Origin: Hyaloraphidium curvatum SAG 235-1
Taxonomy: Eukaryota; Fungi; Monoblepharomycota
Reading direction: 5' to 3'
DNA: 64,000 nucleotides
Assembly (NCBI GenBank): GCA_025558095.1
Contig: JAIVFI010000006.1
Location: forward strand, 744,001 to 808,000
Part shown: positions 18,432 to 40,424 of the stretch, in pieces
Numbering within the stretch: position 1 is the first letter of the stretch
How the letters are laid out: each line of letters opens with the position of its first letter
Notes under the pieces: generated by a model
Databases searched by the model: none
What the model saw: only the letters and a program-made list of their open reading frames with translations
What the model was told of the DNA's origin: nothing
Made by a program: the position numbers and the translations under genes

Positions 18432-20339
18432 TTATGACGGCCTGCCGGTCAGCTTGCCCCACGCCCTGCCGATCCCGTCCAGCACCCCGTCCAGCCCCTT
18501 CCCGCCGTCCTCCACCGTCGCCTGCGCGGCCGTCCGCCCAGCGTCCCCCGCCATCCCCACGTCCTGCTGCGCCTGCGGCACCGGCTCCGCGGGCGGCGAG
18601 GTGAGCTGCCTCAGGGCCTCGACGTAGTCTGCGGGCGAAACGGGGGCGTCGGTGCCGGCGAACAGGGCGCCGCCGGCGTGGGCCGCGCGCAGTTCGGAGT
18701 AGGTCGCGCCGCCGAGCACAAAGACGGCGGCGGCGGGGGGAGGGGAAGCGGCGGGTGCGGGTTCCTTTTTCTTGGGGAAGCCGAACGCGTCCCACGGCTT
18801 CTTCTTGGGCGGCGCTCCGACCGGCTCCGGAGGAATGTCCGCGGCGAGGTAGGGAAACAGCGTCGTGTCCAGTGTCCCCCGTGCCGCATCCGCCAGTACG
18901 TCCGCGACCACGGGCACGTACCCGTCCTCCTCCCGCTCCCCTGCCTCGGAAGCGTACTCCCGCCTGTACACACCAAACGAGCCCGCGACAATGTCCACGT
19001 TCGCGAGGGCGGGCAATGCAAGCGGGGACAGCCTCGCCGCGAGCACCAGCTGCGTCCTCGCCGGCTCCGCGGGCCGCAGGGCGACCAGCGCCAGGAGCAG
19101 CAACCTCAACCTGTCCCCCTCCTGCGTCGCCGGATCAGCGAGCAGCCCCCTCGCGGCATCCAGCGCGTCCCCCCCGGCGCCGCCCCGCAGCAGCATCCTC
19201 TCGACCCCGACGAACCGCGCGATCCGCCGGGCCTCGTACGCAGCGATGCATGCCCCGCACAGCGATACGTGGCCCGCGTACCGCGCCTTCTCCTCGTAGT
19301 ACGCCGGGAGCGAGTGCACCGCGGCGCGGAGGCCGTCCACGCTCGCGGTCGCTTTGGCGTCGCCGAGGCCCTTGCGCGCCGCGGCGTTGGTCTTGGAGAA
19401 GGCGTCGAAGGAGGAGGCGATGCTGCGCGCGGCGAGGTCGATGGGGAGGTGCCTGTTTGCCATCCACAGCGGGTCGTCCGGTTCGAGCCGGAACGTGCGC
19501 TTCACCCCTGCCGCGTCGTCGTAGGCCCACTCGCTGCCCTTGAGCCCGAGCAGATCCCGCGCCATGGCCTCGTACGTCAGCTCGTGTAGCAGCGGCGCGG
19601 CGGGGTCCAGGCTGCGGTCCGCGAGGACCAGCACCGGCCTCTCCGCCTCGGTTTCGGGGAACGGGATGCGGTCCAGCTCGGCGCGCACCATGCCAGCGAG
19701 GATCTCGACCAGGGGGCGGAGGTTGGACCGCAGCCGCGATCGGGAATGGAACCGCACGCGGGGGTTGCCGAGCGAGGAGGCGGCCGAGGCGATGCCCCGG
19801 GCGACGGCGCGGAGGTGCGCGTCCAGGGCGGCGGGGGTGATCAGCGGGGAGAGGGCAAAGTAGGTGGGTGTGGGGAGGGGGGCCAGGGGGAGGGCAAAGG
19901 TGCGGGGGCTGAGGGGGAGGAAGTCGGTGCGGAGGGCGTCGACGTCCGACAGGAAGCTGCCCGCCGGGCCGGTCCCCAGCCGTGCCTTGAGGTCGGGCGG
20001 CGGAGGCGCCGAGAAGACAACACTAGCCTCCGAATAGCGCGCCTTGCCGCGGAAGTCGTCCTCGATCGGCCCGACGGATTCGGCTGACGGCTCGACAAAG
20101 TACACCGCCGGCATCTCGGGCCGCGGCACCCTCCGCCGCGTCGCCGCCTCGACCGCGACAATGCGTTTGTCGAGCACGTCCGTCAGCGAGAAGGCGCTGC
20201 CCAGAACGCGGACCGTCGCGGGGTCGACGACGAGGACGCGCCATCGGTCCGCGCCGCCGGCAGAGAGGACGCCGTCGAACAGTCGCCCGCGGAGCACGGC
20301 GCGCAGATCGTTCGGCAGCGCGTCCTGAGGCGGCCCCAT
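18432..20339 (-). CDS. SEC1: Sec1/Munc18 (SM) family protein, intronless
   Basis: WRVLVVD, AVYFVEPS, LVLADRSLDPAAPLLHELTYEAM, DPLWMANRHLPI, VFVLGGATYSELR. Confidence 0.88.
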   Translation of the reverse strand: MGPPQDALPNDLRAVLRGRLFDGVLSAGGADRWRVLVVDPATVRVLGSAFSLTDVLDKRIVAVEAATRRRVPRPEMPAVYFVEPSAESVGPIEDDFRGKARYSEASVVFSAPPPPDLKARLGTGPAGSFLSDVDALRTDFLPLSPRTFALPLAPLPTPTYFALSPLITPAALDAHLRAVARGIASAASSLGNPRVRFHSRSRLRSNLRPLVEILAGMVRAELDRIPFPETEAERPVLVLADRSLDPAAPLLHELTYEAMARDLLGLKGSEWAYDDAAGVKRTFRLEPDDPLWMANRHLPIDLAARSIASSFDAFSKTNAAARKGLGDAKATASVDGLRAAVHSLPAYYEEKARYAGHVSLCGACIAAYEARRIARFVGVERMLLRGGAGGDALDAARGLLADPATQEGDRLRLLLLALVALRPAEPARTQLVLAARLSPLALPALANVDIVAGSFGVYRREYASEAGEREEDGYVPVVADVLADAARGTLDTTLFPYLAADIPPEPVGAPPKKKPWDAFGFPKKKEPAPAASPPPAAAVFVLGGATYSELRAAHAGGALFAGTDAPVSPADYVEALRQLTSPPAEPVPQAQQDVGMAGDAGRTAAQATVEDGGKGLDGVLDGIGRAWGKLTGRPS

Positions 20340-20772
20340 CGCGGAACCGACTACGACCCGCCCACCCGTCTCAGAACCGGCGTGCCTCCCAGCCACGGAT
20401 AGGAGCCGAGCGGCTCGGCACGGTGTGCCCCCAAAAGTACGTGCCAGCCGCTGGCCCCTCAGCACGGTAGAAGCCACGGTTCATCCCGACGCGGAATCCC
20501 CGTAGCTCCTTCCACGAACCCAGGGAACCTTGGCGGTGGCCCAGGCGACTTTCCCTCCTCCACCTTTTCGAACGACACGGCATTCTTGCTTTCGCTCCCC
20601 GTTGTTTACATTGGCCGCACCGTCACCCTGCGACCCTTTCGACCTTACGACAACCACGGCAGCCGCCTTCGCCGCTGATGTTATAGGTACGCAACGCAAT
20701 CGGTCGGCTTTATGTCCCGGTCTGCTCGTAGCCCGGCCTCCGCCGGTGTTCGCGGATCTCGGTCTCTCTCTC

Positions 20773-20904: not shown

Positions 20905-22583
20905 TCAACGGCCCGGACAAAAGCTCTCCAGCGCCACGTACACGCCGAGCGTCCTCAGCACCGTCCAAATGCCGATCCCCAGGGTCACTGCCGACACCAG
21001 GAAGGTCCTCAGCAGGCCGTACGAGATCGGGAAGCCGAAGAACAGCGCGCGGTAGTCGTCCATCTCCAGGAACGACGAAAGCACCCGGTCGTGCTGGACG
21101 AGCTCGTCCACCGCCTCCGCGGATCCGGGCCCCCCCGGCCGCGCGGCGAGGGCATCCGAAACCAGGACGCGGATCTCCCGCTGCGCGCCGCGGTAGACCG
21201 ACGCGACGGTGGCGAGCTCCTCGTTGAGCGCGGCGAGCCCGACGAGGCTTTCCAGCTCCCAGTTCAGCACGAAGACGATCGTCGCGAGCTGCCATGCGCA
21301 GATGCAGCTTCCGGCGGCCTGCGACGCACGGCGGCGAGGAGATCAGTGAGGTAAGGGACAAAGGAACGGGCAACGACCGACACCCACCATGGTCACAACC
21401 ATACCGACCAAAACTGCAACCGGAACAGTGTAGGTGTACGAGCTGCGCACTATCTTCAGGTTGAGCGAGTTGCGGGACCGCCAGAGACCGCACAGCCTGT
21501 AGTGCAGGCGGACGTAGAGGTACTGGTCGTTCTTGCCGGCGTTGGCCGCGGAAGGCCCGGAATCCCCGGACAGGAGGAGGGCTCGGTACCGTTCCAGGAG
21601 GGAGCGGACGGCGAGCGCGGCGGCGCGATGCTGCAGCCTCTTTTCGACGTCCGCGACGCCGGTGTTGGGGTGCGAGATGAGGGACGTCGCCATGAAGAGA
21701 TACGAGAAGAGCAAGACCGCTGCGATGGTGCAAAGGTCGGTGAGGATCGACCTTCCGAGTGCCGAGGAAACCAACCCAAAAGCGTCAGCAGAAGATATGA
21801 CCACCAGTAGCCGAAAAACTGCGAACCAAAGGTACGGAAAGTCGTGATTGGTATCAGGACGCTGTAGCACCACACGAACGCCGCGTTGCTCGCGACGACG
21901 ACGAGCCCGTGCCACGCCGTGTTCCTGGGCGTCCGTCCGGCGCAGGAAGCTTCCGGGCACGGGCACAGCTCGTCGCCCTCCTTGTGTAGAACGAGCTGTG
22001 ACCGTGGCTTGGACCCCGGGGCCTGTTCCTCGCGCCCGCGGGCGACCAGTTGCAGCCAGCGCGCGAGAGGAGCGAGGCCCGACGCGTCCAGGGAGACCTC
22101 GGGGTTTTCCGCCCTGACGTAACTGGGCAGCCTGCTCAGCGCAACGAAGTAGTACGCGCTCAAGCTCAGAACGAAAAGAACGGCCGCTGCGAACCCCGTG
22201 GCGAGCTGCGCGCCCCCGAACCTCCCGTCGTTGAACCGGAACGCCAGTCCCATGATCGCCAAGGCAACGGCAGCGTAGATGATGTTGAAAGCGAGATGGA
22301 GGGGAATCGGGGCCACCAGCTTCAAACCCGCCACCGCGGTCGCGTGGAGCGCGCCATGGCCGCGGAAGGACGCGAGCATCGAGTCGATCGTCAGCGGCCG
22401 CGCGACGCGCAGCTCCGCCGCGGGATCGGCGGAACGCCACTCGTGGCGGTCGGATTCGGCGTCCGCAAAGGTGTCCAGCGGTGGCAGGGCCGGCGGAAAG
22501 AGGGTGAGCCACTCCGCCGGTTCGAAGTCGAACGGCTCCTCAGCGCCCGCGGGCGGATGCGGCGCGTCGGGCAGCTCGATCAT
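20905..22583 (-). CDS. 7-TM family member A (gustatory-receptor/DUF3537-like candidate); 2 introns
   Basis: DFEPAEW, FNDG, PLARWLQL, HKEGDELCPCPEASC, EKRLQHRA, YLYVRLHY, FFGFPISYGLLRT...ESFCP; shared with three paralogues in the window. Confidence 0.8.
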
Positions 22584-22970
22584 CGTCAAGTGGGGCGTGT
22601 CTGGGAGTTTGGGACGCGCACGGCGGGACGGCGGGACGACACCTGATGGAGAGCGTGTACCCCGGGAGAGTAGAATTGATCGAGCGCGCAGTCATCTTCG
22701 CGTGTCCGACCCGATTCAGCTTCTCTCTCACGCTGATGTCATGGACGTGGATGGTTTAGGATGATCAGAGGTGGAGGACGATCCGTACTACGCTGCAGAT
22801 GGACCGACTATACAGAGCCCGTTACACTCAGGGCCCGTTGCGCTCATGACCTACATAAGCTCATGATCTACCTGACGACACATCAGATCCCAAAGCCAGC
22901 GCGTCCAAAGCCAGCGCGTCCCAGAGCCAGCACGTTTGAACTTCGCATCAGGCCGATCATTCAAAACTCC

Positions 22971-24069
22971 TCACTTGCGGTCGATGGGAAAGTCAAAAGG
23001 CACCACCCATCTCGTGACGGGCAGCCCCTCCACCTCGGCCTCCCTCCCCTTGCCTCCGGCCAGGAACTCGTCCCTCAGCACCGGATGCGCGAGCTGCTCC
23101 GGCGCCACCTGCGGCCCGGCCTTGTTCCCGTGCGCCACGTCCTTTTCCAGCTGCGCGTCAAACTCGCCCGCCGCCAGCCGGTCGGGGAAGTAGATCTGCG
23201 TGCACAGGGTCCTGTAGCCGGGCGCCGAGACGTAGAAGTGCAGGTGGGGCGGGCGGACGGCGTCCGGGTACGAGGCGCCGGTGAGCTTGCAGTAGGCCGT
23301 GAGGAGGATGCCGGGGACGAAGCCGAGGAGGCCGTTGAAGACGTAGAACGCGGCGGCGGAGTACATGCCGATGCTGACGGGGTACAGCGTGCCGATGGCG
23401 TAGCGCCCCGTGGTGGGGTCCGCGGAGTAGACGCCGCGGAAGTCGTAGTCGAGGTCGAGGTCGCCGTACTTGGGGACGCGGCCGCGGGGATCCGCCGCCC
23501 ACGCGCGGAGGGTCGCGTTCGGAACGGGTTTGCCGGTGGCGCGGTCGACGACGCGGCCGAACATCGCGAGGGTGTCCTTGGAGTCGCTCTTGTCTTCGGC
23601 GCTGCGGTGCGACGCGAGGGAGGCAAAGTCGGCGCCGGAGTAGAGGGCGTTGACGACGGTGTCGAGGGGCGCGCTTATAGTGGGGCCGAAGAGCGAGGCA
23701 AGGAAGCCCCTGTGGCCGCTCTTGCGCCGGTCGTAGAGCCAGAACTTGCGCTGGGGAGGCGAGAGCACGTACTCGGGTCCGTCCTGCGATGGAAGGATCA
23801 GAGATGAGCAAAGGTCGGTCCTGCTATGCTCCGCCACGCACCGCATCCTCGAGCGGGTTCGACTGGTCGTAGCCCAGCAACTTGCCGATGAAGGTGCCGC
23901 GGAGCAGGGTGTCCCCGACGAGCGCACCCGGCCAGTAGAACAATCCGCTTGCGACGAGGGCCCCGAGCGCGAACGGCGCCGAGACCCGGGGCGCGACCTC
24001 GTTTTCGAGCTCCGACGCGGAAGCGGCGCCGTTGGCGGTTGCGGGAGCCGTCGTCTTGGTGGCGGACAT
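22971..24069 (-). CDS. Intradiol ring-cleavage dioxygenase-like protein; 1 intron
   Basis: DGPEY, FGRVVD..GKPVPNA..WAADPRG, RPPHLHFYVSAPGYRTLCTQIYF. Confidence 0.82.
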
Positions 24070-24127
24070 GTTCTCTGGTGGCTTGAGGATGCTTTCGTGG
24101 GTGCAGTCAAGGGTTTGTCTCCTTTAC

Positions 24128-24142
24128 GACAATTGAATTGTC
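24128..24142. promoter_or_regulatory. Palindrome GACAATT-G-AATTGTC in an 87-bp divergent intergenic region
   Basis: Perfect 7-bp inverted repeat with 1-nt spacer, AT-rich in a GC-rich context; function is inferred. Confidence 0.35.
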
Positions 24143-24156
24143 ACCCACGGGCAACA

Positions 24157-25139
24157 ATGGCATTCCGCTACGAACCGGTCCCGCAGCGGCTGCAGCGGCC
24201 CCACCTGCGGCTGTACCTCGACACCGCGTCGCCTTTCTCGTATCTGGCCGCGGTCGTCATGCTCCGGCTCCGCGACGACCCCGCGTCCCCCTGGCGCGGC
24301 AAGGCCGACTTTGAATTCGTCCCGATCTCGCTCCCGGAAGTCCGCAAGCGCGCCGACAACTGGCCCGGCCCGCCGGCCATCAGGAGTGGGTTCCCGCCCG
24401 CGGCCGGAGAAACCGGCCGTTGGTTTACCCTGCGGCCCCATCCTCCCTGACCCCCGGCGCGCAGAAAAGGCACGTTACCTTGCCCTGGACATGGTCCGCG
24501 ACCGCCGGACGTACCGCGTCCCGCTGGTCCCCAACCCTGCCGCGTTCCCCGCGCGGACCGAGGAGAACCTGCTACTGCTCACGCACATCAAGGTCAAGTA
24601 CGGCGAGAAGGCCTCAGAGACCGCGACGATGGCGCTGTTCGAGGCGTACTGGGTGAAGGACCAGGATCCGGCAAAGGACGCGGTGATGGAGGAGTGCGCG
24701 GGCAAGGCGGTGCCCGGGGGGCCGGCCAAGGTCCGGGAGATCCTGAAGGCGATCAGGAAGGACGGCAAGCAGGAGAAAGAGTGGCTTGAGAAGTGGGTGC
24801 CGTCACCATTAAGCTCTTTCCGGGCCGGTTGCTGACTGTCCTGCCTCCTCAGATGGACGACCGAGTGCGCCGACTCGGGCGCCTTCGGTGCCCCCTGGTT
24901 CAAGGGCTTCGCCGCGCGTCCGGACGGATCCACGGAGGAGCAAGTGTTTTTCGGGTGGGTACCTATGGCTTCCCGCCCTTCGCGCAAGCTGACCGAGCCC
25001 CTTCCGAACCAGCTCGGACCGCTTCGAGCACATCGCCGACTTCTTCGGGCTCCCCTGGAAGGGCTACATCACGTCCCCCGAGAGCACGCCCGTGCCGCCG
25101 CCGCTGCAATGGCCCCCGCCGCGGAAACCGAAGCTCTGA
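24157..25139 (+). CDS. DsbA-like GST-kappa / 2-hydroxychromene-2-carboxylate isomerase; 3 introns
   Basis: YLDTASPFSY, KARYL..D, GAFGAPWF, FFG|SDRFEHI; ends PKL*. Confidence 0.85.
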
Positions 25140-25716
25140 TGCCAGGGCCAAAAGCCTCTGTCGTTGCACCAAAGTGACGCCGCCAGTTGGGATGGGGGGG
25201 GAAGAGGGGGAAAAAGGAAAGAAAGCGTCGAACCCGTTTCACTTCGCCTCGAGAAAATGGGTCCGAAGCAACCTGCCACGGCCGACTGGTCGAAGTTCGA
25301 CTCTCCGGTCTCTTTGCGCGCTGCGCGACGGCCTCCTCGCCGCCTTCTGCGGACACCTCGCAACGTGGCTTCCGCTATTCGAACGACCGTTGCCGCCGGC
25401 GTTGATGCTTCCAACCGTCATTCATTTCCCGCGAGCGAAACTGAAGAGGCCGAGCACCTGCTGTACGCTGATGAGGCCGCTTCTGGAAGGATGCAGCTGG
25501 AGAGGGTGCAGAATCCCTTTGGACCTCCATGCCCCTTGCTGGCGGTCGGAAACCACCGGCGCGCCGGTGAAGTGGCTTGCGGGGCCAGCGGACGCATCTC
25601 GAGGCGCACATCGTCGTCCGGGCGGGCGTTGGCGGGCTCCCGACGCGTGCCGTTGGGGCCCCGCCTTTGTCTCCCCGGTTTCCTCCGACCCCCGGCGGAC
25701 GCCTTGCTGGCAGACG

Positions 25717-28700
25717 ATGGAGGGGGAAAACGGTGCCGGCAGCGCGTCGCCGACGGCGCCCGCGGAAGACGAGGGCATCGCCTCCCTCCTGTACAAGAAC
25801 AGGCTCAGTGCCCACTCGCTGAAGCCCGGCGCGCCCGTGGTGTTCGCTCACGCCAACTCCCCGCGCAACAAGCCCGGCTGGATGACCACCCTGGACACGA
25901 TGAAAGAAAAAGAGATCAGCAACTTGAACAGGGACAGCCTGTTGTCGGTTTGGAGCAGGAGCGAGGGCACCTTTGTGCTGTACGTGCCGCCACCGACGAG
26001 CGCGTTCGCAGGGAGCTCATTCAAGCGTCCGCAGCTCCCGCACGGCCATTTCGCCCGACTCAGGAAGCGGCAGGAAGGTCTTGCCGCGAGTGCCTCCCCG
26101 CGGCCCGCGCCTGGTACCCCCGACCTCCTCCCCGCCGCTGGCTTCGAGCCCGAGCCCGCCTTCCGAGGGCCCGCTTGCGCAAGGCGGTTCTTCTCCCCTT
26201 GGCCACCGATCCGCTGCTTTGCGGTCTTTCGATGCATCGGAAAGCGAAGGGGAAGAGGACGGGCGGGACGGAGCCCAACAGGGCCTTTCGCCTTCAGGGG
26301 TGGAAGAAGTGGTCGAGTGGGACGGCACGCCCGCCGCCGAAGATGCCGCGGGAGCACCGGACGGAGGTGCCCGGGAAGAATCCGCCTCGCCATCCGTCGA
26401 GGAGGCGTTCGAGGACGCCGAGGACGCGCCCCAGGAGCCCGCCGGCCATCCACCCGTGGAGCACCTCGAGGGCCGGGACGTCGGATCCTTTCCGACGGAC
26501 GGCCGGCTGCTCGAACTGAGCAAGTCCGAAGCGCAGTTCCTCCAAGACCTGCATCAGGTGCGGGAGGAGATCGACGAGGTACTGAATCAGAGCGAACCCG
26601 GAGTTCCCGGACGCCGGCAAGTGCCCGCGGGACCCTCGGAAAGCGACGGACAGCACCCGGCCCCCACGATGCCGGCCGGGTCCGGGAACGCGGAGCACTT
26701 GGAGCCTGCGCAGCCCGCCGGCAGGGAGCACCCGGGTCCCGCTGCGCTTTCCCGGCCCGAGATCTCCCCCCGTTATACCGTGCGCGAGATCAGCCGCCTC
26801 GCCGCCGGCCTCGAGTCCGAACTGGAAGCTCTGGAGGAAGAGAACGGCCGGCTCCGCGCGAGGGAGGCGGAGCGGGACCGCGAGGCGGCCAGAATTCAAG
26901 AGGAGGCGAGGGCGGAAACGGAGGGCCTGCGGAAGCGGATCGCGGAGCTGGAGGCCGAGGCGACGCAGGCGCAGCGCGCGGCCGAGGCAGAGAGGCAGAC
27001 GGCGACCGGGCTCAGGGAGGGAGCCGGGCGCGCCGAGAAGCTGGCGTCGGAGCTGGACTCCGAGCGCGCGAAGCAGGTCGAGCTCACTGGCAAGGTCGCG
27101 CAGATGGAGGAGCAGCTCGAAAGGGCTGCGTCGGCGGTGGCGGAGGCACAAGGGGAGCGCGATCGGGCGGCGGCGCAGCTCCAGTCGGAGCGTTCCGGGC
27201 GTGCCAAACTCGAGGACAGGGTCGTGGAGCTCGAGTCGGAGCTGGAGAAGGCCAGGTCGGCGGCATCCACGGCGCAGAAGGACCGCGATCGGGCTGCGAG
27301 AGAGCTCCGCCAGGCCGCCGATGCCAAGGACGAGGCTGAGCAGAAGCTTGCGCAAGCCGAGGAGGCGGCATCCACGGCGCAGAAGGACTACGACCGGGCG
27401 TTGACGCAGCTCCGCCAGGCGGTCGAGGCCGTGGAGAGCAGGCTGGCTAAAGAAACGAAGGAGCGGACACGCGTCGAGGCGGTCAAGAGGAACGCGCAAC
27501 AGGAACTCAGGAAGACCAGGAGCGAGCTGAAGGATTCCGAGGAAAACGTCAGGCAGCTCATCCGCAAGAGGGAGGAAGCCGCCAAGGTCGGCGACACGAC
27601 GCCGGAAGCCGAGGAGCAACACGACGGTTCGGGTCGAGCGGCAACTTCGGAATCAAGTTCCCTCGCGCAAGCGGCCTCGTCGTCCTCGGCGGATCCGCCT
27701 GCCGTACCGGCGACTCCGACGTCAAGCGGGCGCGCAAGCCCGGCTTCGGCGACATGCGCCTCCCTCCCTCCTGCCCTCTCCGGCTCCAGCACATCCGCCG
27801 GCAACCTTTCCCTCCCCACCCCCACGACCACCCCCGTCCGCACTGCCTCTGAACTGCTGAATCCGAAGGAGCTGGTGCGCGCGGACGTCAAGCATGCCTG
27901 GAATGTCTGCAAGAAACGTCACGCACAAACCGACCGCGCCCGTTCCGAATCAGTGTCGTCGTTGGGCACTGCGCGGCCGCAGAGGGACACGGTCACGGAA
28001 GTGGATTTCGACGCGCTTGGCAGGCGCTTCAACGCAAAATGGTGAGACTTCCCGAGGTCAGCGTGTCACGGCTTGTCACGACGGAATCTCCACAGGCGCC
28101 AGCTATCCCGGGTGCAGATCGCACGCAGGGACGCCGTCGGCTTCCTCCGCTTCGCCAGGGAGGAGCTCGGGTTCCAGCCCTGGCCGGAGGATCCCCCGGA
28201 GCCGTACGTCGAGCCGAAGCCCGACGACGTGGAGGGAGCGGAGAGCGACGCCGAGGGGAATGACGCCGGTGGAGACGGAGGAAACGGCGAGGACCGGAAC
28301 CCGGGCGCGGAGGGCGACGACGAGAGGGAGGTCGGCGGCGGAGACGGGAGCAACGTCGAGGAGCGGAAAAATGGCGGGGAGGGCGACGACGAGAAGGAGG
28401 ACCGCGGCGAGAACGAGGAGCGGAGAAAGGACAAGGGCAAGGGCAAGCCGGAGCGACGAAGCCGGGAGCTAGAGTCGGATGAGGAGAAGACGAGGAAAAG
28501 GGCCAAGACCGAGAGCTCCGCGAGCCCGCCGCGGCGGCCGAAGAGCGCGGTGGCCAAGACGTCTTCATCGGCTGGATCAGGGCAAGGAGTTGCTTCTCCG
28601 TTGGGAGAGCAGGCCGAACAAGGGGTGCTGGGCAAGGCTGCAGACGATGCAGATGACCACGGGGCGGCGGCTTCGAATCCTGAGGTCGTCGTGATCAGCA

Positions 28701-28723
28701 GTGACTCTGATGAATCCGAGTAG
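25717..28723 (+). CDS. Large coiled-coil, low-complexity protein; introns near 25.98 kb and 28.05 kb
   Basis: Long E/A/R heptad region; internal 35-aa duplication (AASTAQKD.DRA..LRQA); basic RKRAK NLS-like tail. Confidence 0.65.
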
Positions 28724-28954
28724 TTGATCTTTTGGATTGTTGCTTTTCATTCTGATGGAATCTTCCCTTGATCTGTGCGCGGAATGATCTTAAGGGGGGC
28801 GTGAGGCTGCGGCCGCGCTGCGCCCTTTCCAGAGCGTCCCGAGTCACCCACGATTTGTCCTTCAAACGCGCCTGGGCACTTTCTCGTCCACCTTGGCACC
28901 CTTCCACTGACATTTCCGTACATTCCGCGGCGAAATTCGGCAGACCGGCTCGCG

Positions 28955-30529
28955 ATGGCTGCTGCTTCGGAGGACGCTTCTGCGTCCCTTCCAGAGGATC
29001 CCCACCGGCGCTCCCTCGACAAGACGCTCCCGAACAACGATTCCGTCTCTCTCCCGCCTAAAACGGACGCTCAGTATTCCCCGGCGCCGGACCTGGAGCG
29101 CGGAGTGCCCGATGCCGAGGGCGAGAGCGCTCTGGTCCGCAGGCTCGACCTTCGGATCATTCCCTGGATCGGGCTCTGCTACCTCTTCGCCTATCTGGAC
29201 CGGTCCAACATTGGCAACGCCGTGATTGCGGAGGGCGACATGCTGGGATCCCTCGGGATAGCTCCGGGCTCTCCCGAGTACTCCCTCGCCCTGTCAATCT
29301 TCTTCGTGGGGTACCTCCTCTTCGAAATCCCCTCCAATATCCTGCTCAAGTGGGCGACCCCGTCCAAGTGGATCGCGAGGATCATGGTGACTTGGGGCAT
29401 TGTGGCGGCGTGCACGGCCGCAGTAACCAACGCCGCCGGGCTCATCGCCGTCCGCTTCTTCCTCGGCGTCGCCGAGGCGGGGTTCTTTCCCGGCGTCATC
29501 TACTTCTTCGCCTTCTGGTACCGGCAGGACGAGCAGGCGAGGCGGATCTCGTGGTTCTTTGGCGCAGTCTCGCTCGCCGGCGCCTTTTCGGGCCTGCTTG
29601 CCTCGGCAATTGGCTTCCTCCACGGCGTCGGGGGCCTAGACGCCTGGCAGTACCTGTTCATCATCGAAGGTGTGCCATCCGTGATCCTCGGCATCCTGAC
29701 GATCTGGATGCTGCCCGATTTCCCTGGCACGGGCGCTAAGTGGTTCGGCCGCGAGTGGCTAACTCCCGAGGAAGACGCGCTTGCGGCGTCGAGGATGGCG
29801 GAGCATGCGCCCAAGGCTTCGGACCCGGCATTCGACTGGATCGAGTTTAAGGAGCTGTTTTCGAACCCGAGCCGGGCACGGACGGCATCGACATACCTCT
29901 TGCCGCTGATCTACTTTGCCTTCGCCTGCGGCAACTATTCGATCAGCTTCTACCTCCCCACGGTCGTATTGAGCTTGGGGTCGTTCCAAACCTGGCAAGC
30001 CCAGCTTCTGACGGTGCCGCCTTACATCGTCGGCTTCTTTGCCGCCATCTCTGCCTCGTGGTTCTCCGACCGCTGGGCAAAGGTACACGGAGACGAGCCC
30101 ACCTTCAAGGCCTCGCGAGCCTGGCAACTCGGCCTTGCATTCACGCTGACTCTCATCGGTGTCTCGGTCTGGGCCGCCGGCGTTTCTGGCTGGGCCGGCT
30201 ACGCCGCCGCCTTCCCCCTCCTTGCCGGCAACCAGGCGGCGGTGCCCATTTTCTGGGCCTACGGGGCGCAGCACTTTTTCCGCGGGGCCACGGGCCATTC
30301 GGTGGGCATCGCCTGGGTGAATAGCGTCGGGAACCTGGGCGGATTCGCCGCGCCGTACTTCTTTTTCGGGACGGGCCAGGAACGCCTCACGAGGGGTTTC
30401 ATGATCAACGCCTGCGTCCTATCGGTAGGGATCGCGCTGCTGGCGCTGCTGGAAGCAATCAGGCTGTCGGAGGCGCAGCGGACTTTGCGGACGACCGTGT
30501 CGGCGGATGAAGAGCCGAGCAAGGTGTAA
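28955..30529 (+). CDS. MFS transporter, allantoate/nicotinate (ACS) permease type
   Basis: RRLDLRIIP, YLDRSNIGNA, FEIPSN, RFFLGVAEAGFFPG, WQYLFIIEG; about 12 TMs. Confidence 0.92.
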   Translation: MAAASEDASASLPEDPHRRSLDKTLPNNDSVSLPPKTDAQYSPAPDLERGVPDAEGESALVRRLDLRIIPWIGLCYLFAYLDRSNIGNAVIAEGDMLGSLGIAPGSPEYSLALSIFFVGYLLFEIPSNILLKWATPSKWIARIMVTWGIVAACTAAVTNAAGLIAVRFFLGVAEAGFFPGVIYFFAFWYRQDEQARRISWFFGAVSLAGAFSGLLASAIGFLHGVGGLDAWQYLFIIEGVPSVILGILTIWMLPDFPGTGAKWFGREWLTPEEDALAASRMAEHAPKASDPAFDWIEFKELFSNPSRARTASTYLLPLIYFAFACGNYSISFYLPTVVLSLGSFQTWQAQLLTVPPYIVGFFAAISASWFSDRWAKVHGDEPTFKASRAWQLGLAFTLTLIGVSVWAAGVSGWAGYAAAFPLLAGNQAAVPIFWAYGAQHFFRGATGHSVGIAWVNSVGNLGGFAAPYFFFGTGQERLTRGFMINACVLSVGIALLALLEAIRLSEAQRTLRTTVSADEEPSKV

Positions 30530-30617
30530 AGACGAGGGGAGCCAATCCTCGAGGCTGACGGGCAAATCCCTCATCGTCGTCGTCAATCGCGTGCCCCCCG
30601 CGTCCTCTCAAACCGCA

Positions 30618-32185
30618 ATGGCCGAAGTGCGCCGCGTCGAGGCCACCGATTTCACGCCCGCGGAGTGGACGGCCTTGTTTCCGGCGCCCTCCGCTCCCGT
30701 GGACACGTTCGGAGGCGAGGACGGCGCTGAGGATCCCGCCGCGGCTGGGCGCGCCGCGGACCCGTTCACGAAGGAGGCCCAGGCCAAGGAATTCGATTCC
30801 CAGCCTCTGAAGGGACTTGCCTGGCTCGGAGAACATCTCGCGGCGTCTGCGTCGGGTTGGAGCCGTTGGAGCGCTTTCATCTGCTGGGCTTCACTGTTTG
30901 CTCCCTCAACCGTTCTCCTCGCCGTCGCGGCGTCCTGGAACAACGGCCAGTACTCCACCGGGAGCGTGGCCGTGGGATTTGCGGGCATCTGCGCCAATTA
31001 CGTGACGACTCTCTCAATTATGGTGCTCGTTGCCAAGATGCTGCCGAACGGTGTGCCGCCCGACTTTTGGACCACCGCCGGTCTCTTCCGCTGGCTCAGG
31101 CTCGTGCGCGCGCCGGGTGCTGATTCGGGCAAAGGCGAGACACCGGCACGCCTGGTGGAGCACGTGGCCGGCGACCCCGTGTGCACCTGCGCAACCTGCG
31201 GCCGACACGCTCAGACTGCTGCGGGATGGCTGGCCCTCATCGATATGCTTACCAACTATTTCCTTGCTTTGGCCATCTTTTTCTTCGCCGTGTATACCCC
31301 TGTTGTGACCCACGGGCCCCGCTTGGGCTCCACCTCCTGGGGCATCACACTACTCACCCTTTACGGTCAGTCCTGCGAGCTCGCAAGCAGAGAAACAACA
31401 AGATGACGACCTCCTTCTCTAGCGATTGCTTTGTTCGCCAATATTCTCGCGTGGACGGACAGGTACAAGCTCACGAGCAACATCGCCTACAGCGGGCTCG
31501 AGCGGCGCCTCCAAACACGAGCCGTGGCGCTGTCCATGCGGGACCTTCTTCTACCTTTCCGCGACTCTTTAGCCAACGGCGCTCTCCCGCCGCGGCTCGA
31601 AGGGGGAGAATGGCTCTACGTTCGCCTTCATTACAGATTCGTCTCCCTTTGCCGCTCCAGGGACCGGCAAGACCAGAGCCTGCTGAGCAGGCTGTACGCC
31701 CTCATCCAGGTGCCGCTCTTGGTCTTGTGCGCTCTTCTCATGGCGGTGGGCTGCCTCGCCTGCTGACACAAACCCAGCTGATCGCCCGATCCGACCAGGC
31801 CGTCGGCCGTTGCCTAAACGTCTGGATCATCGTGTACTTTGCGCATGTGGTTGCCTGGTTCACCACCAACGCCGTCAACCTGGCCGCACGGAACTCGCTC
31901 CTGGATGCCGTCGACGGCCTGTACCGCGATGCTCAGCGCGAGTTGCGAACGCTGATGCTCCGTGCCCGCCCGGGACCGCTCGCGGACGAGGTCGCGCTGC
32001 ATGTTTCCGCTTTGGAGGGCTTTGTCGCGGCCACCGCAGGGCGGGCGCGGCTTTTCGGGTTCGTGGTCTCGTACGGGACGGTGCGGACGATGCTGGTCAC
32101 CATCGTGACTGTCGCGGTGGCACTCTGGAGCGTGTTGAGAGGGCTGGGCGTCACGCTGACCCCGGAGAGCTTCTGCCCGGCGTAG
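30618..32185 (+). CDS. 7-TM family member B; 2 introns
   Basis: DFTPAEW, WNNG, LFRWLRL, HVAGDPVCTCATC, ERRLQTRA, WLYVRLHY, LFGFVVSYGTVRT...ESFCPA; intron positions match member A. Confidence 0.82.
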
Positions 32186-32343
32186 CTCTATTGTAGAGAG
32201 CACTTGATATCGTCGTAAATCGTCAATGCTGCAGTGTTCGGTTCATTGTCTGCCCTTCCCCTAGTTCAGTGCAACGTCCCGCTTCAGACTGACATATTGG
32301 AGCCAATCTGAGCGAAGCAGGGATTCGCTGAGTTCGCAATCAG

Positions 32344-32808
32344 TCAGAGGTCGCGGCACATGAGCACATGTCCGGTCGAGTCGTCCCCAAGACCGGCAGC
32401 CTCCACAGGCGCGTCGCGGCCGGTGACTACGAAGCCAATACGCGTGTGGAACGCGACGGAGGCCTCGTTAACTGTTGAAGTAACGCATCGCACGCGTCGT
32501 ACCCCGCGTGCGCGCACCAGGTCCGCGAAAGCGTCGTGTAGCCGCCTGCCCAGCCCTTGGCCCCGCAGCCGCGGGTCCACGCCGACCATGTGAACGTACG
32601 CCTCGTCCGGGTGGTCCTGCGACACGAAGCCGATGAGGAAGCCGGCGAGCTCGTCATCGGCCTCGGCCACGAGCGACGTCCCGGCAAAGTGTTCCAGGAA
32701 CAGAGACGGCACGAGAGCGCGCAGGTCGCGGCCACCCCACCACGCGGGCATTGCCGCGAGGATGCGCGCGTGGTCGGAAAGGCGCGCGCCTCGCAGCTCG
32801 ACCGCCAT
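32344..32808 (-). CDS. GNAT N-acetyltransferase, bacterial-type, intronless
   Basis: WWGGRDL..LFLEHF, YVHMVGVDPRLRGQGLGRRL (acetyl-CoA motif), N..SVAFHTRIGF. Confidence 0.9.
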   Translation of the reverse strand: MAVELRGARLSDHARILAAMPAWWGGRDLRALVPSLFLEHFAGTSLVAEADDELAGFLIGFVSQDHPDEAYVHMVGVDPRLRGQGLGRRLHDAFADLVRARGVRRVRCVTSTVNEASVAFHTRIGFVVTGRDAPVEAAGLGDDSTGHVLMCRDL

Positions 32809-32816
32809 TCCTTGTT

Positions 32817-33248
32817 ATGAGCCGTGAGGGGGCCAACGATGAAAACTCCGGACCCGCACCCGGGAAAAAGCCGCTGCTCGCACATGCTGCTATCAGTCCT
32901 GTCCTAGATGACGAAGGACCCAAGAAACAATCACCGTGGGATTGACCGGGCGTTCGGTATTTCCTTCTCCATCGTCTTGGCGATCTCGTAATCTCGTGCA
33001 GCCGCGCGAGGGCGTTGGGCTGCTTCAAGGAGTGCTGCTGCCACATCGGCAGGTTGAAAAAGGACATGTTCGGCGGGGACATAACCACGTGGCGGAACTC
33101 TTCTGCTTTCAATCCTGGTGCCCCGCCCCGCGCCAGTGACGAAGGAGAGCTTCAAGCGGTGCGCGAGATGCAAGCTGGCCCAGTACTGCTCGCTCCAGTG
33201 CCAGAAGATGCACTAGCCCATGAATCGCTCGGGATGCAGCACGGCTGA
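32817..33248 (+). pseudogene. MYND zinc-finger pseudogene
   Basis: VISCSRARALGCFKEC, then a frameshift to FKRCARCKLAQYCSLQCQKMH*P; the conserved Trp codon is TAG at 33214-33216. Confidence 0.7.
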
Positions 33249-33558
33249 CCCGAGCTTGGCGTCGACGCCGCGTTGACAGAAGGACGAGTCGGAGGCGCCT
33301 TAGGGCGGGATGTGCTGTTCGGGGCGACAAGACGGGCAGGACGGTTGGAAGCCCATCCAGCGCGCCACGAGTCTCTGTAGACATGAGAGAACATTGAAGT
33401 TGATAATCAAGCTTCGACACGGGCGGAAGTCGGCACCGCCGGAAGTTCCGGAACTCCCCGAAGCGTCGCAAGGGAACGGCCGACGCGCGCCGACCGCCTT
33501 TCGTTGCCTTCCTCGGAGCCCAGCGCGGCTCCTTCCGCTCCGAATTGAGGGGCGTCCG

Positions 33559-34422
33559 ATGGCGTCCGAATCGCCCCAGCCGGGCCCCCCGCCCGAGCTC
33601 CCGCCGGAGCTCACCCTCCTCACGTTCGGCCACCACTTCCCCCCGTACCCGGCCTGCGCGCGCGTCTTCTCCGTGCGCGCGTTCAAGTCCCCCAAGGGCG
33701 CGCTCAAGGGCAAGAACGGCCTCGCGCGGGAGCTGCAGGACGCGCTGCTGGCGGTGCCCGGGGCGCGGGAGCGGATGGCCGAGATCTGCGGGTTCGCGGA
33801 GCGCGCGGCGAGGGATCCCCGGGGGGCGGTGCCGGCCCCGGATGGGTCGGTGTCGAACGACGAGATGTCGGCGGCGAATTCGGACGCGGACCCCGAGAGC
33901 GAGGTCGAGCCGGGGAGGTCGCCGACGCCGCCCTCGGGGACGGCCACCCCGGCGCCGGAGGAATCCCCGCTGCCGCCGGGGCCCGTGGTCGGGATCATGT
34001 GCGACCACGGGCGGCATCGCAGCGTGGCGATGGCGGAGTTGTGCAGGGCGGAGCTGGAGAGGAGGGGGGTCAGGGTGCACGTGCGGCACAGGGACCTGGG
34101 GAGGGGGAAGACGGCAAAGGAGAGGGAAAAGACGGAACGGAGGCTGGCCAGGGAACGGGAGGAAGCGGAGGGGAGGGGGGAGGGAGGGGTCGTGGACGGG
34201 CTCGAGGCCGAGGCGGACCGGATCGCGGTGGCGGAGGTGGCGGACGGGCAGGCCCCGCCCGACGCTCCGCCCAACGCGGCCAACGCAGCCAACGCGGCCA
34301 AGCCGCCTCTTGCCGACGATTTGGAGGGATTGGCGTCGCCTACGCCGACGGACGCCCGCCCCAACGAGCACCACGAGCAACGGCAGAATGGGAGTGCCGG
34401 TGCCCCCGGGAACGGACCTTGA
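33559..34422 (+). CDS. Stand-alone RapZ C-terminal-domain-like protein
   Basis: LTFGHH...VFSVRAFKSP...KNGL and VGIMCDHGRHRSVAMAE...VRHRDL match the RapZ SFG/DVR/CTGGxHRSV/HR pattern. Confidence 0.75.
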   Translation: MASESPQPGPPPELPPELTLLTFGHHFPPYPACARVFSVRAFKSPKGALKGKNGLARELQDALLAVPGARERMAEICGFAERAARDPRGAVPAPDGSVSNDEMSAANSDADPESEVEPGRSPTPPSGTATPAPEESPLPPGPVVGIMCDHGRHRSVAMAELCRAELERRGVRVHVRHRDLGRGKTAKEREKTERRLAREREEAEGRGEGGVVDGLEAEADRIAVAEVADGQAPPDAPPNAANAANAAKPPLADDLEGLASPTPTDARPNEHHEQRQNGSAGAPGNGP

Positions 34423-34601
34423 AAATGTACGTCACCAGGAATTGGAGATCGGAGTGGCCGGCTGTAACCGGTCGAGAACCCAATTCGCTGGACAAGCCGG
34501 ATCAGCTACTTGCTGACCGCGGGGTCCTTGGGACCGAAGCTTCACTCGACACACCAGCACCTTCCCAGAAGCACGTCTCCCGCCCCGCATCTCGATCCGC
34601 A

Positions 34602-36181
34602 ATGACCGCCGCCGCCGACTTCTCGCCCGAGGAATGGCTCGCGATCGTCCCCGCGGCGCTCCAGCCTCCGCCGCCGATCCCCGGCCCGCTCAAGGCGCCC
34701 GCCGACCCGGCGGCCGCCGCCCGCGCCGAGCGGCCCCTCACGGGGCCGGCGATGCTATCCGCCGTCCGCTCCTTGAGCGCGGGCCTCGCGGCGTGGCTCG
34801 ACGCGCAGTTTGTCCTCGCGCCGTTCAACGCCCGCGTGGGCCTGCGCTACGGGGCCGCCGCGGTCTTCGGGCTCGCGCTGTGCCCCGCGTTCGTCGTGCT
34901 GAACGACGGCCGCTTCCCCCCGCGGGCGCTGGGCTGGGGCATCGCGGCGTACTGCCTGCTCATCTTGCTGTCGCACGGGGCCGTCATGCGGGCCGCCTGG
35001 AGGTCGACCGTGTTTGGCAACGCAAAGGCGGGGAGCGCCCCCGCCGATCCGGACCTCGGGGCCCACGCCTTCGCCCCGCTGGCACGCTGGAAGCAGCTGC
35101 TTGACTCGGAGGGTCTCGCACCCGGAGCAGCCGACAGTGACGTGGAGCTCGGCGGGCGTGGAACACCGTGCCCTGCACGAAGATCGCGCCTCGTCGCCCA
35201 CCGCGACGGCGACCCGCTCTGCCCGTGCCCCCTCCCCTCGTGCGCCGGCAACCTCGCCCGCGCCGCCGCATGGTCGCGCACGGCCGAGATCGGCGTCCGC
35301 TACCTGTTCAGCGTCGGCGGCCAGGCCATGGCGGCCTACACCCTCGCCGCCACCTTCGCCCCGCGCTTCTGGACCTCCTGGTTCTGGGCCCTGCTGGGCG
35401 CCCTGTACTTTGCGGGCGTGGTGTGGGCCACGATGCTCGGCGGGCTGGGGAGGGTCTCGGCGTCGTTCCCGGCGATGGGGCTCGTGGAGAGGCTGCACGT
35501 CCGGGCCACGTCGATCGCGCTCGGGTCGCTCCTCGACCGCCTGGAAGCCCAGCTGGCGGGCGATGTTCCTGCAGGGGCTGGGGAAGGGGAAGCGGGCGCG
35601 CGCAAGGGGGAGGAGGAGCTCTACGTGCGCCTCCATCTCGTCCTCTCGACCGTCTGGCAGAAGCGCATCCCGGGGCTCTGGACGGGCAACGCCGCCACCT
35701 TGTCCATGTTTGCCGCCGTCGCCCTCATCTGCATCTTTTTCAACATCGTGGGTTTGCTCGCCGCCACCACAACGCGGGCCTCTGACTCCCCCCACAGATC
35801 GGAGGGCTCTGCATCCCCGCCTACGCCCTCTCCATCTCCGCCTTTGTCCTCTCCATCTTCCTCCTCGACCTCTCGGGCATCGCCGCCGGCAACTCCCAGA
35901 TCCGCTCCGTCTCCGCCCTCTACTCCTCCGCGCAGCAATCCCTCCGCCGCCTGGCCCTCCTGCACCCATCCCACCCCCTGCTCCCCGCGCTGGACCGGCA
36001 CGACCGGATGCTCGGCTCGTTCACGGACGCGCGGGCGTACGAGATGCGGTTCTGGGGGTTCGCGGTCGGGTACGGCACCGTGAGGACGATCGCGGCGACG
36101 GTGCTGACGGTCGGGTTCGGGCTGTGGAGCGTGGCGAGGGGCAGCGGGGTGTACGTGACCCCCGAGACGGTGTGCTACTGA
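34602..36181 (+). CDS. 7-TM family member C; 1 intron
   Basis: DFSPEEW, LNDG, PLARWKQL, HRDGDPLCPCPLPSC, ERLHVRA, ELYVRLHL, FWGFAVGYGTVRT...ETVCY*. Confidence 0.82.
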
Positions 36182-36284
36182 GGCGGGGCTGCCGTTGCCA
36201 AGCTGATTGCTGACGTGGCTGCTTCCACCGTCTGTACCGCATTCAGGAGGGTTGGGCAGGAACTGGACAGGCAGGAGGCATGAT

Positions 36285-36362
36285 CTGCGCGGGTTCAAGG
36301 GGTGCTCGCGCTGCAAGCTCGCGTTTTGCTGCTCGCGCAAAGGACTGGAAGGAGCACTGCGT
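36285..36362 (+). pseudogene. MYND finger remnant
   Basis: FKGCSRCKLAFCCSRK, then DWKEH in a shifted frame (ECQ segment deleted). Confidence 0.55.
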
Positions 36363-37018
36363 GATGTGCAAGCTGGACGGATGACGTGCTCAAGAGGGGT
36401 TTCGTGGCGGTGACGTGGTCGATGATGTGGCCCGGCGCGGACCAGGACGGTAGAGCAGAGCGACAGGTGGACGTGATGAAGTTTACTACATGGGAAGTAG
36501 GACCGAGTCTGGTTCACTGATTCCAGGTCGCGCGGCGAATTGCTCTGATTCCAGGTTGGCTGGCTGCCGGCTTCAGGGGTCGCTCCCCCCGCCGCTACTT
36601 CCCTTGCTAGCAAAATGGGTAGTGAGATCCCCTGCGGGGGGCTTCCGGGCCGGTGGTGGCCGGACCCCGGGTGGAGCGCGCGCCCCTCACGCGCTGCACC
36701 CCTCGGCGCCCTCAACCGCAGCCACGGTCGACGGCGACGGACATGAGAATGGCGGACATGAAGGGGGACGGCGGCGGCAACACGGCTGAGGGGTGGGAGG
36801 GCGGGCGGCATGCCGGGACCGCGGTACCTTCTCACGCCCGGCGCTCCCCGCGACAGGTTCGACGCGCAGGAGGCATTTGCCGACAAGGAGCGCGAGGAGG
36901 ACACGTACGACGATCTGCCTATGTCTAAATCCCAGTCCGACGTCATTTTGTCTTCACTCCCGGAGTAATCTCTCATCGTCGATTGGGTGCGTGCAGTTCC
37001 GGAATGTGGTCGCGCCGA

Positions 37019-37742
37019 TCAGGTCGAATCCGCGTCCAGCTGCCTGCACAACTTGCTGTGCTGCGGCCAATGCAGACGCTGGCATTCCTTCGAGCAGTAA
37101 TGAGGGAGTTTGCACGCCGAGCACCGCTTGAAGTTGTCTTTTGCCGTTCCCGGGAGCAGACGACGCTGTCGCTCTTCTCGCCCGCCAGCTTTTTGTCCTT
37201 GCCGATCTGTCGCAATTGACGGAGTGCTCTTTCGAAACAATCGGCACCGGCGCCGGAGCATGAGAGCACCGTCGTCTTCTTGAAGCCGAGCTCGGCGCGG
37301 AATGGTCCCTCCATGTGGCACGCCGATCTCACGCAATGCGAGGTGTCCATGGCTTCCAAGCCGCAACGCAGTCCGCAACCAAAGCATCGTTGGCTTGCGC
37401 TCTGTCCATTGGTCCTCCCACGCGCGCCCTGCAGTGTCCAACACAGAGGCAGCCCGTTGGATCCGCGGCAAGAGCGTCCTTGTTCACCGCAAAAAGAGCG
37501 TCCCTGATTTCCGGGCCCTGGTTCGCCCCCTCGAACAGCACGAGACGGTACGCGGTGAGCGCCTCTTTCCGACCAACGCGCCCATTGGAGGCGATGGGTC
37601 CGCGCACGCGTGGCTTGGCGGCGCCCAGCATGACATGCAGAGCCTCGCCCGTTTGGAGGTGGGTTTCGTGCAGGCGGCGGGGTCTGAAAAGGGCAGGAGT
37701 TTGCGGACGGATTGGGACCGCGGGACCGTGGTTTCGAATCAT
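37019..37742 (-). pseudogene. MYND zinc-finger gene with two apparent frameshifts
   Basis: KPRVRGPIASNGRVGRKE (paralogous to 42788), RCFGCG...CFERALRQL and FKRCSACKLPHYCSKECQRLHWPQH lie in different frames. Confidence 0.7.
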
Positions 37743-37829
37743 CAGGCCCGCTGTTGGCTTGACACCGCAAAGCTGAGGCCAAAAAAAACGAGATTCATCG
37801 ACGACGGCTTACGCAACTCGATGATAGAG

Positions 37830-39005
37830 CTACGCCGGGCAGAAGCTCTGGGGAGTCAGCGTGACGCCCAACCCCCTCAGCACGCTCCACAGCGCCACGG
37901 CGACCGTCACGATGGTGACCAGCATCGTCCGCACCGTCCCATACGAGACCACGAACCCAAACAAGCGAGCCCTACCCGCTGTGGCCGCGACGAACCCCTC
38001 CAGAGCGGATACATGCAGCACGATCTCGTCCGCGAGCGGTCCGGGGCCGGCACGGAGCATGAGCAACCGCAGCTCGCGCTGCGCGTCGCGGTACAGGCCA
38101 TCGACGGTAACGAGGAGCAAGTTCCGCGCGGCGAGGTTGACGGCGTTGATGGTGAACCAGAGGACCACGTGCCCGAGGTATAGGATACCCCAGACGTTGA
38201 GGCACCATCCGATGGCCTGTTCGCGGGCGTCAATCAGATGGGCTCTCGACCAAGAAAATATAACCCACCGCCATGAGCAAAGCGCACAAAACTAGAAGCG
38301 GGGCCTGGATAAGGCCGTACAACCTGCTCAACAAGCTCTGGTCTTGGAGGTCTCTCGAGCGGCAGAGGGCGACGAACCTGTAATGGAGTCGAACGTAGAG
38401 CCATTCTCCCCTTTCCAAGACGCGGTGCTGGAAGGCCGGTGGCCAAGGATTCGCGGAAAGTCGACAGGAGATCCCGCACTGACAGGCCTGCAGCACGAGT
38501 GTGAAGGCGCCGCTCGAGTCTGCGGTAGGCGAGGTTGTTGACAAGCTTGTACCTGTTTGTCCATTCGAGAAGATTGGCGCACAAAGCAATTGCTGAAGAA
38601 AGTTACCTCATTGTCCGTTCTCCCGTTGCAAGCACGCTGGACCAAACGTAAAGGGTGAGAAGTGCAATGCCCCAGGAGGTGGACGACCGGGGTCTGGACG
38701 GCAAAAAACAAGATTGCATCAGAGAACCCAAGATTAATGACCACATCAATGAGGCCAAGCCATCCCGCGGAAAGCTGAATGCTTCGCCCGCAGGAAGCAC
38801 AGGTGCACCCGCGGTCGCCGGCCACGTGCTCCACTAGCCGCGCCGGAATTCCTCCTTTGGGCGAATCCGTTCCCGGCGCTCGCACGAGCCGAAGCCAGCG
38901 AAAGAGACCAGCGAACGTGTCCACGGGGGCAGAGGGCGCCGGAAACAGGGCCGTCCACTCCGCCGGCGTGAAATCGGTGGCCTCGACGCGTCGCACTTCG
39001 GCCAT
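37830..39005 (-). pseudogene. 7-TM family member D: inverted, degenerate duplicate of member B
   Basis: Identical N-terminus MAEVRRVEATDFTPAEW...VDTF joins directly to AGLFRW (TM1-2 deleted); frameshifts near 38.68 kb and 38.41 kb; 3' exon nearly identical to B. Confidence 0.8.
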
Positions 39006-39206: not shown

Positions 39207-40424
39207 TCAGATGTACTTGCCGCCGACGAGGTGGGGCTCCACCGGGCGTTCCGTGTCCTCGAGCACGTCGGGGTACTTGCGCACGATGTACTCGTAGGTC
39301 GGCTGTCGGTTTCGAGGATCACCAGAAGACAACGGTCAGCACCGAGACAATGCTCACCACCGCACCGGCAAACCGACCTGGAAAAAGAACCACGCCCCCA
39401 GCACCGTGCTCGAGCTCCCGTCCCTCGTCCTGACCGCCACGTCGTGCGGCAGCCAGCTCTCCCTGAGGCTCGCGCCCGCCGCCGCGGCCTCCGCCATCAT
39501 CTGCACCCCCGCGTTCTCCTCCGCCGAGTAGTACCACCAGCACATGTCCGCCACGCTCGCTCCCGCGGCCAGGAACCCGTGGTTGCGCAGGATCACCAGC
39601 CTCGTGCCCCCCTCCAGCAGCCGCCCCAGCTCCTCGCCCTCCTCGGCGGCCAGCACCACTCCGGAGTAGACCTCGTGCACGGCCTGGCGCTCGTAGAAGC
39701 CGCACGCATCCTGGTTGATGGGCTCCAGCACGCGCTCGCGGACGGTCTGGCCCGCGTGGGGGGGGAGCGAGGAGAAGGCCTTGCCCTTGGGGGAGTGGCA
39801 GTGCAGGATGGAGACGATCTCGGGGCGGGTGCGGAAGATGCCGGCGTGGATGGCGAAGCCGGCGGCGTTCACTGCGAAGCGAAGCGGGGGGATCGGAATT
39901 GGTGAGCTTTGTCACTCCGAGGACGTCGAGCAGGAGACCCACTAGGCCTGTTCCCGTGGATCACCTCGCCGGCCTGGTTGATGAGGAGGAGGTCGCCCGC
40001 CCGCATCTCAGTGAACGCCACGGCGAGAGGGCTTTCGTAAGGGGGGCAGGGGGGGGAGAGCGTGAGCGGAACTAAGGATAGAAGTCCTGCGAACCCACTT
40101 CATCCAGAAGCAGTCCGGAAACTCCGGGTCGCGCACGGTGGCGTGCCCCGCGATGCCCATGTCCCAGCCGAGCTCGCCCCACCAGCGGAACGCGGCGGCC
40201 AGCTGTGCCTTGCGGAAGAAGCGCTCCTCCTCGACCGTGCTGAACGACGGCCGCCGCGGGATGAAGCGCGGCGTGCGGTGCGCGGCCTCGACGTGCTGAG
40301 ACGCGCGCGCGCGGGCGGCGGCGGAGAGGGAGGAGCCGGGCGAGGCGGGGGCGGACTCGGCGGCGAGCTTCACGGAGCCCGCCGTGGCCGTCGCCGTCTC
40401 CGTGGTTTCGGTGCCCGACGGCAT
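39207..40424 (-). CDS. Class II aldolase/adducin-family protein; 3 introns
   Basis: LAAAFR, GHATVRDP, NAAGFAIH, HCHS, ILRNHG. Confidence 0.88.

Follow-up and report, generated by a model that had tools for sequence, protein, structure and literature searches.

A genome-wide family of candidate OR/GR-type seven-transmembrane receptors in the unicellular fungus Hyaloraphidium curvatum

Four paralogous loci in the window

The window analyzed here is a stretch of 64,000 nucleotides (nt) from Hyaloraphidium curvatum SAG 235-1 (contig JAIVFI010000006.1, positions 744,001 to 808,000 of the forward strand). It contains four loci, genes A to D, of a protein family with seven transmembrane (TM) segments, which we propose to be receptors of the 7TMIC superfamily resembling insect odorant and gustatory receptors (OR/GR). 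All four paralogues were present at the coordinates originally given, and each runs from ATG to stop:

20905-22583, minus strand: gene A, intact, 517 amino acids (aa); exons 22583-21776, 21719-21388 and 21318-20905
21720-21775, minus strand: first intron of gene A (56 nt, phase 1), which interrupts TM4 at the same position as gene B intron 1
21319-21387, minus strand: second intron of gene A (69 nt, phase 0), which falls between TM5 and TM6 in the loop, directly before a G-x-C motif
30618-32185, plus strand: gene B, intact, 485 aa; exons 30618-31365, 31423-31745 and 31799-32185
31366-31422 and 31746-31798, plus strand: gene B introns
34602-36181, plus strand: gene C, intact, 509 aa; exons 34602-35747 and 35798-36181
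35748-35797, plus strand: sole intron of gene C, at the intron 2 position
37830-39005, minus strand: gene D, a pseudogene and inverted duplicate of gene B, from the alignment of the two

Splicing and translation of genes A to C yielded intact frames of the lengths listed. The models of A and B were identical to the H. curvatum hypothetical proteins DFJ74DRAFT_703269 (P0004) and DFJ74DRAFT_703274 (P0035), and the GenBank model of gene C (P0003) corresponds to its last 232 aa only. An apparent frameshift in gene A was rejected, as it represents intron 1. Shared intron positions had also been predicted; intron 2 is indeed common to all four loci, but intron 1 is absent from C and shared by A, B, and D only. 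Across the family (loci L002-L070) intron content is patchy, with many intronless members and others sharing intron 2 before G-x-C. Some introns are in frame and free of stop codons, which misleads automatic gene prediction; the models P0001 and P0003 are faulty. No fifth copy was found in the window with tblastn and the family hidden Markov model.

Transcript evidence concerns genes B and C and comes from run X1, possibly of the reference strain. Both introns of B and the intron of C were spliced out at GT..AG ends in X1 contigs, so that both genes are transcribed and spliced. Exon 1 of gene C was mostly covered by these contigs.

Gene D lacks 366 nt spanning TM1-TM2. A deletion of 23 nt and, near position 38418, an insertion of 1 nt have shifted its frame; its last exon is still open. 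DNA identity to B is 77-85%, but 95% in the first 92 nt (38914-39005 versus 30618-30709), and this stretch, adjoining the 366-nt deletion, suggests recent gene conversion with B. Because the last exon shows a dN of 0.078 and a dS of 0.50 against B, gene D probably retained its function during most of the period that followed the duplication. B and D are the sole local duplicate pair among the four loci. For close paralogues dN/dS was 0.25-0.49, remaining below 0.5 in every pair tested (0.40-0.49 for gene C and its nearest paralogues), and the C-terminal part was the more identical. Pseudogene D and these ratios, which indicate purifying selection alongside continuing loss of genes, support the birth-and-death evolution proposed for the family.

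Topology, conservation, and predicted fold

Figures for conservation, loops, and topology refer to 106 aligned members. Family-averaged hydropathy revealed seven hydrophobic segments, and no signal peptide was apparent, the first 45 residues being without a hydrophobic stretch; both features had been predicted. Only in gene C does TM3 lie below the single-sequence hydropathy cut-off. The expected alternation of short and long loops was also recovered, with medians of 8 (TM1-2), 13 (TM3-4), and 4 aa (TM5-6) versus 75 (TM2-3), 79 (TM4-5), and 72 aa (TM6-7). Since Lys and Arg are enriched in the N-terminus and the long loops (a positive-inside pattern), we infer an intracellular N-terminus and an extracellular C-terminus. 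Conserved elements were located as follows:

21942-21986, minus strand: His-x3-Asp-x2-Cys-x-Cys-x4-Cys cluster in the TM2-TM3 loop of gene A, a candidate metal site
31161-31199, plus strand: His/Asp/Cys cluster of gene B with a shorter last spacer, from sequence and alignment
35199-35243, plus strand: His/Asp/Cys cluster of gene C
32057-32176, plus strand: segment of gene B with the conserved beta-hairpin, TM7b, and the C-terminal Cys, located by a pattern match; the stretch quoted in the original prediction

In gene A numbering, His200, Cys207, Cys209, and Cys214 of the TM2-TM3 loop were kept in 105 of the 106 members and Asp204 in 101, and this cytosolic cluster probably binds zinc. Two further cysteines, Cys385 in the TM5-TM6 loop (105/106) and Cys514 in the tail (102/106), both lie on the outer side, where they would probably form a disulfide. 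Identity was lowest in TM1-TM5 (0.15-0.19), intermediate in the TM4-TM6 anchor (0.32-0.36), and highest in TM7 (0.46), the most conserved membrane segment. On one face of the TM7 helix, six positions are occupied by Ser, Thr, or Gly in 71-100% of members, a polar stripe suggestive of a pore face.

AlphaFold2 models and structure searches covered genes A and B (pLDDT 89.5 and 91.8); single exons, intronless paralogues, or database proteins served as search queries. Both models contain seven TM helices. OR/GR representatives were ranked first and aligned over the full length for both models and by two programs: they were the top matches of gene A and made up all of the top 8 VIA and top 14 Foldseek matches of gene B. 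Other folds, such as GPCR, MFS, MATE, and ALMT, ranked far below. In the gene A model, TM4, TM5, and TM6 extend into the cytosol (helices 260-281 followed by 289-320, 337-383, and 388-438), with the same arrangement in B. TM7 is split into a cytosolic helix (444-463), a short hairpin at about 470-478, and a membrane helix (480-503), as read from secondary structure. A mildly hydrophobic helix (77-89) precedes TM1 and might correspond to the N-terminal re-entrant loop (TM0) of 7TMICs.

The family thus shares with insect OR/GR (MhOR5 7LIC, AaegOR10 8V02, AgamOR28, BmGr9, DmGr43a, Orco) the predicted fold, the seven-TM topology with an inner N-terminus, the cytosolic TM4-TM6 anchor, the split TM7, a conserved C-terminus combined with variable N-terminal helices, and a large birth-and-death repertoire. 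It differs in (i) an identity of only 7-12% in structural alignments, at a root-mean-square deviation of 5-6 Å; (ii) the long TM2-TM3 loop with its His/Asp/Cys cluster; (iii) the extracellular C-terminal tail with a conserved Cys; and (iv) the animal GR/GRL TM7 motif, (T/S)Yhhhhh(Q/K/E)(F/L/M), which is reduced to Thr alone (Thr492, 103/106), the other positions being V/L, S/T/G, and V/I/L. The chytrid GRL1 proteins of Spizellomyces likewise conserve one of the four motif positions (PMC7746228).

These models make it very likely that the A-C family has the 7TMIC fold of OR/GR type. Structure searches, topology, and conservation all favor the fold and inner N-terminus of the original prediction, and nothing pointed to an outer N-terminus, a TM number other than seven, absence of OR/GR similarity, or a better match elsewhere. 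A lineage-specific helical bundle that converged on this shape without relationship to OR/GR is improbable, given the first rank of OR/GR for two independent models and the concordance of topology, loop asymmetry, split TM7, and conservation pattern. Matches to a cnidarian 395-aa cluster in an atlas shape search (TM 0.48/0.60) and to DUF3537 and 7tm_7 clusters in a language-model feature search also speak against convergence.

No significant Pfam match was obtained with individual exons or with 57 members, PF12056, PF08395 (7tm_7), and PF12129 included; genome searches with these three profiles, run without positive controls, were blank, and a sequence search of the PDB returned spurious matches only. 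The proposed assignment to plant DUF3537 (PF12056) was therefore not upheld: PF12056 matched none of the 57 members, and the language-model similarity was weak (0.91), ranking below ciliate and TMEM39 clusters. The Class-A topology is shared with DUF3537, and the G-F-x-V-D hairpin presumably resembles the DUF3537 end.

The same fold might also serve proteins other than ligand-gated plasma-membrane channels, for example transporters, scaffolds, metabotropic receptors, or proteins that reside in internal membranes like PHTF and TMEM39. The candidate metal-binding loop in the cytosol would then couple such proteins to partners. The long first intracellular loop (median 75 aa) is a mark of Class-B PHTF-like 7TMICs, the language-model search placed TMEM39B (0.93-0.94) above DUF3537, and the structural deviation from OR/GR is moderate. 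However, a housekeeping role would not account for paralogues that number in the hundreds and diverge in TM1-TM5 while conserving TM7, and the outer Cys pair and polar TM7 stripe fit a surface channel. PHTF-like proteins are encoded by one or two conserved genes per genome, in contrast to the large family here, whose loop carries a distinct Cys cluster and whose members do not match PF12129; no PHTF1-2_N match was obtained in the genome search, which had no positive control. We regard this alternative as unlikely.

Family size and relatives

Using the last exons of genes C and A as queries, we detected at least 150 loci each at E ≤1e-16 (from 526 and 527 candidates), and at least 201 in their union. 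Two independent exact DNA patterns were then counted genome-wide: the C-terminal G-R-T-W-R-G-C spacing matched 270 times and the His-Asp-Cys-Cys-Cys spacing 313 times, each with one control match. Corrected for sensitivity (80 and 97 of 143 sampled proteins, respectively), these counts correspond to about 480 (420-565) and 460 (415-525) loci. The family hence comprises roughly 460-480 unannotated membrane proteins, an estimate in which pseudogenes and some duplicated segments are counted as well. Paired loci with identical matches on separate contigs (L025/L026; C17:638892 and C47:84361; C17:659815 and C47:105286) represent segmental duplications or haplotigs and slightly inflate copy counts.

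The copies were thus not expanded locally, as first supposed, but form a genome-wide family of several hundred. Pairwise identity among A, B, and C (29-33%) is close to the family average (mean 27%). In the family tree, A and B fall into one clade of eight members and C is distant; among the matches listed and in the tree, the nearest kin of each lies outside the window. Sixty of 73 listed loci were situated in the outer halves of contigs (p 2e-8).

Among 1.84 billion proteins, the family profile matched 465 representatives at 50% clustering; those checked were mostly, but not all, from H. curvatum. Homologue searches based on words recovered no more than 5-8 proteins, exclusively from H. curvatum, and clearly missed most relatives. 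Three representatives (L072, L073, L074) lie on Logan contigs of SRR26194948. Their source is a fungus related to Hyaloraphidium, with a GC content of about 55%; its genes for a TRP channel and a PALP enzyme share 57-74% identity with their H. curvatum counterparts. At least four members of the family are encoded in this fungus, two of them as a tandem pair on one contig. As its three proteins fall into different clades (FastTree support 0.78-0.92), the radiation probably predates its split from H. curvatum. Further members were found in JGI and ENA metagenomes; scans of metagenome contigs with gene B and with P0140 gave no match. No non-fungal relative was seen among the best 150 matches listed. 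The top-scoring member, P0006 (DFJ74DRAFT_696950), has a metagenome relative of 50-54% identity (P0159/P0134; L075, L076), unlike other cross-species pairs with only about 30%; speculatively, it may be a conserved, Orco-like member.

Passive spread of mostly non-functional copies by segmental duplication, retrocopying, or assembly duplicates would account for the many intronless members, the few identically doubled loci, and pseudogene D. This explanation is already largely refuted and has a negligible likelihood: members average 27% identity yet retain near-invariant Cys, His, and Asn residues, dN/dS is 0.25-0.49, frames are long and open, transcripts are spliced, and the members of the second fungus belong to different clades.

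Outside animals, 7TMICs are known as single genes or small families, with one per Spizellomyces genome and 4-12 in plants (DUF3537; PMC7746228), as opposed to hundreds in H. curvatum. The chytrid GRLs (Spizellomyces punctatus, S. palustris GRL1), compared here by description, are likewise 7TMICs of early-diverging fungi; they were absent among the matches listed for the family profile. The superfamily and its single chytrid members have been published (PMC7746228; bioRxiv 10.1101/2023.08.30.555482). We found no published account of the Hyaloraphidium family or of any fungal 7TMIC expansion in a search that lay outside the supplementary sequence sets of Himmel 2023.

Proposed function and genomic neighborhood

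With a probability of about 0.55, we read the family as lineage-expanded 7TMIC receptors working as ligand-gated channels. The computed basis of this reading comprises topology, similarity of fold, the pattern of conservation, selection, and splicing; tetramer, pore, ligands, and cellular role are carried over from insect OR/GR. Subunits would form homo- or hetero-tetramers through the anchor, with TM7 lining a central pore by its Thr/Ser/Gly face. The ligands would be small molecules that differ among paralogues and bind in a pocket between TM1-TM6, and binding would open a cation/Ca2+ conductance. H. curvatum has no flagellum, and its lifestyle is unclear (PMC6899921); the output of the channel therefore cannot be swimming, but the conductance would allow this non-motile cell to adapt its growth, release of spores, dormancy, or defence.

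Genes near the four loci were the following:

18435-20477, minus strand: Sec1 family
22974-24110, minus strand: intradiol dioxygenase
28955-30526, plus strand: MFS transporter
32347-32808, minus strand: GNAT acetyltransferase
39357-39911, minus strand: class II aldolase
37058-37123 (minus), 42431-42496 (plus), and 47353-47418 (plus): MYND-type zinc-finger motifs

None of these neighbors shows a functional link to the family. One X1 contig continues upstream of position 30500 for 630 nt and enters the MFS gene. A strict MYND pattern matched 185 times genome-wide with no control match, indicating a second large expansion. A fixed pairing of 7-TM and MYND genes was not supported: a MYND neighbor lay within about 1.5 kb at only one of 70 loci.

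An alternative that differs from ligand-gated chemoreception mainly in biological role is surveillance for non-self or danger, in which parasites, grazers, competitors, or damage would open channels of the same fold and trigger defence or cell death. A very large, old, fast-turnover family lying toward contig ends in a non-motile cell, the expanded MYND-finger genes, and ongoing pseudogenisation, as in gene D, would fit this role. Against it, ten long members carried no fused effector domain except for one C-terminal SIMPL (DUF541) annotation (P0061, probably a merged gene model), no MYND neighbor is fixed, and dN/dS was below 0.5 in all pairs tested. We consider such surveillance possible but rather doubtful.

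For the preferred reading of ligand-gated receptor channels, the wider implication is about evenly balanced: Hyaloraphidium and its relatives may have evolved, independently of insects, a chemoreceptor-channel repertoire of at least about 450 genes on the OR/GR fold, with a new cytosolic zinc-type module, serving a non-motile single cell. If true, this would be by far the largest such repertoire described outside animals. The models suggest that a single-celled fungus has a sensory repertoire on the scale of an insect's, and several hundred copies in a culturable unicellular fungus suggest that the fold was recruited twice for diversified sensing. As a natural alignment of great depth, the paralogues cover a very divergent branch of this fold, and the fungus provides a tractable system for asking whether ligand gating is ancestral to the 7TMIC superfamily. 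They also raise the question of what a non-motile aquatic cell senses with so many receptors.
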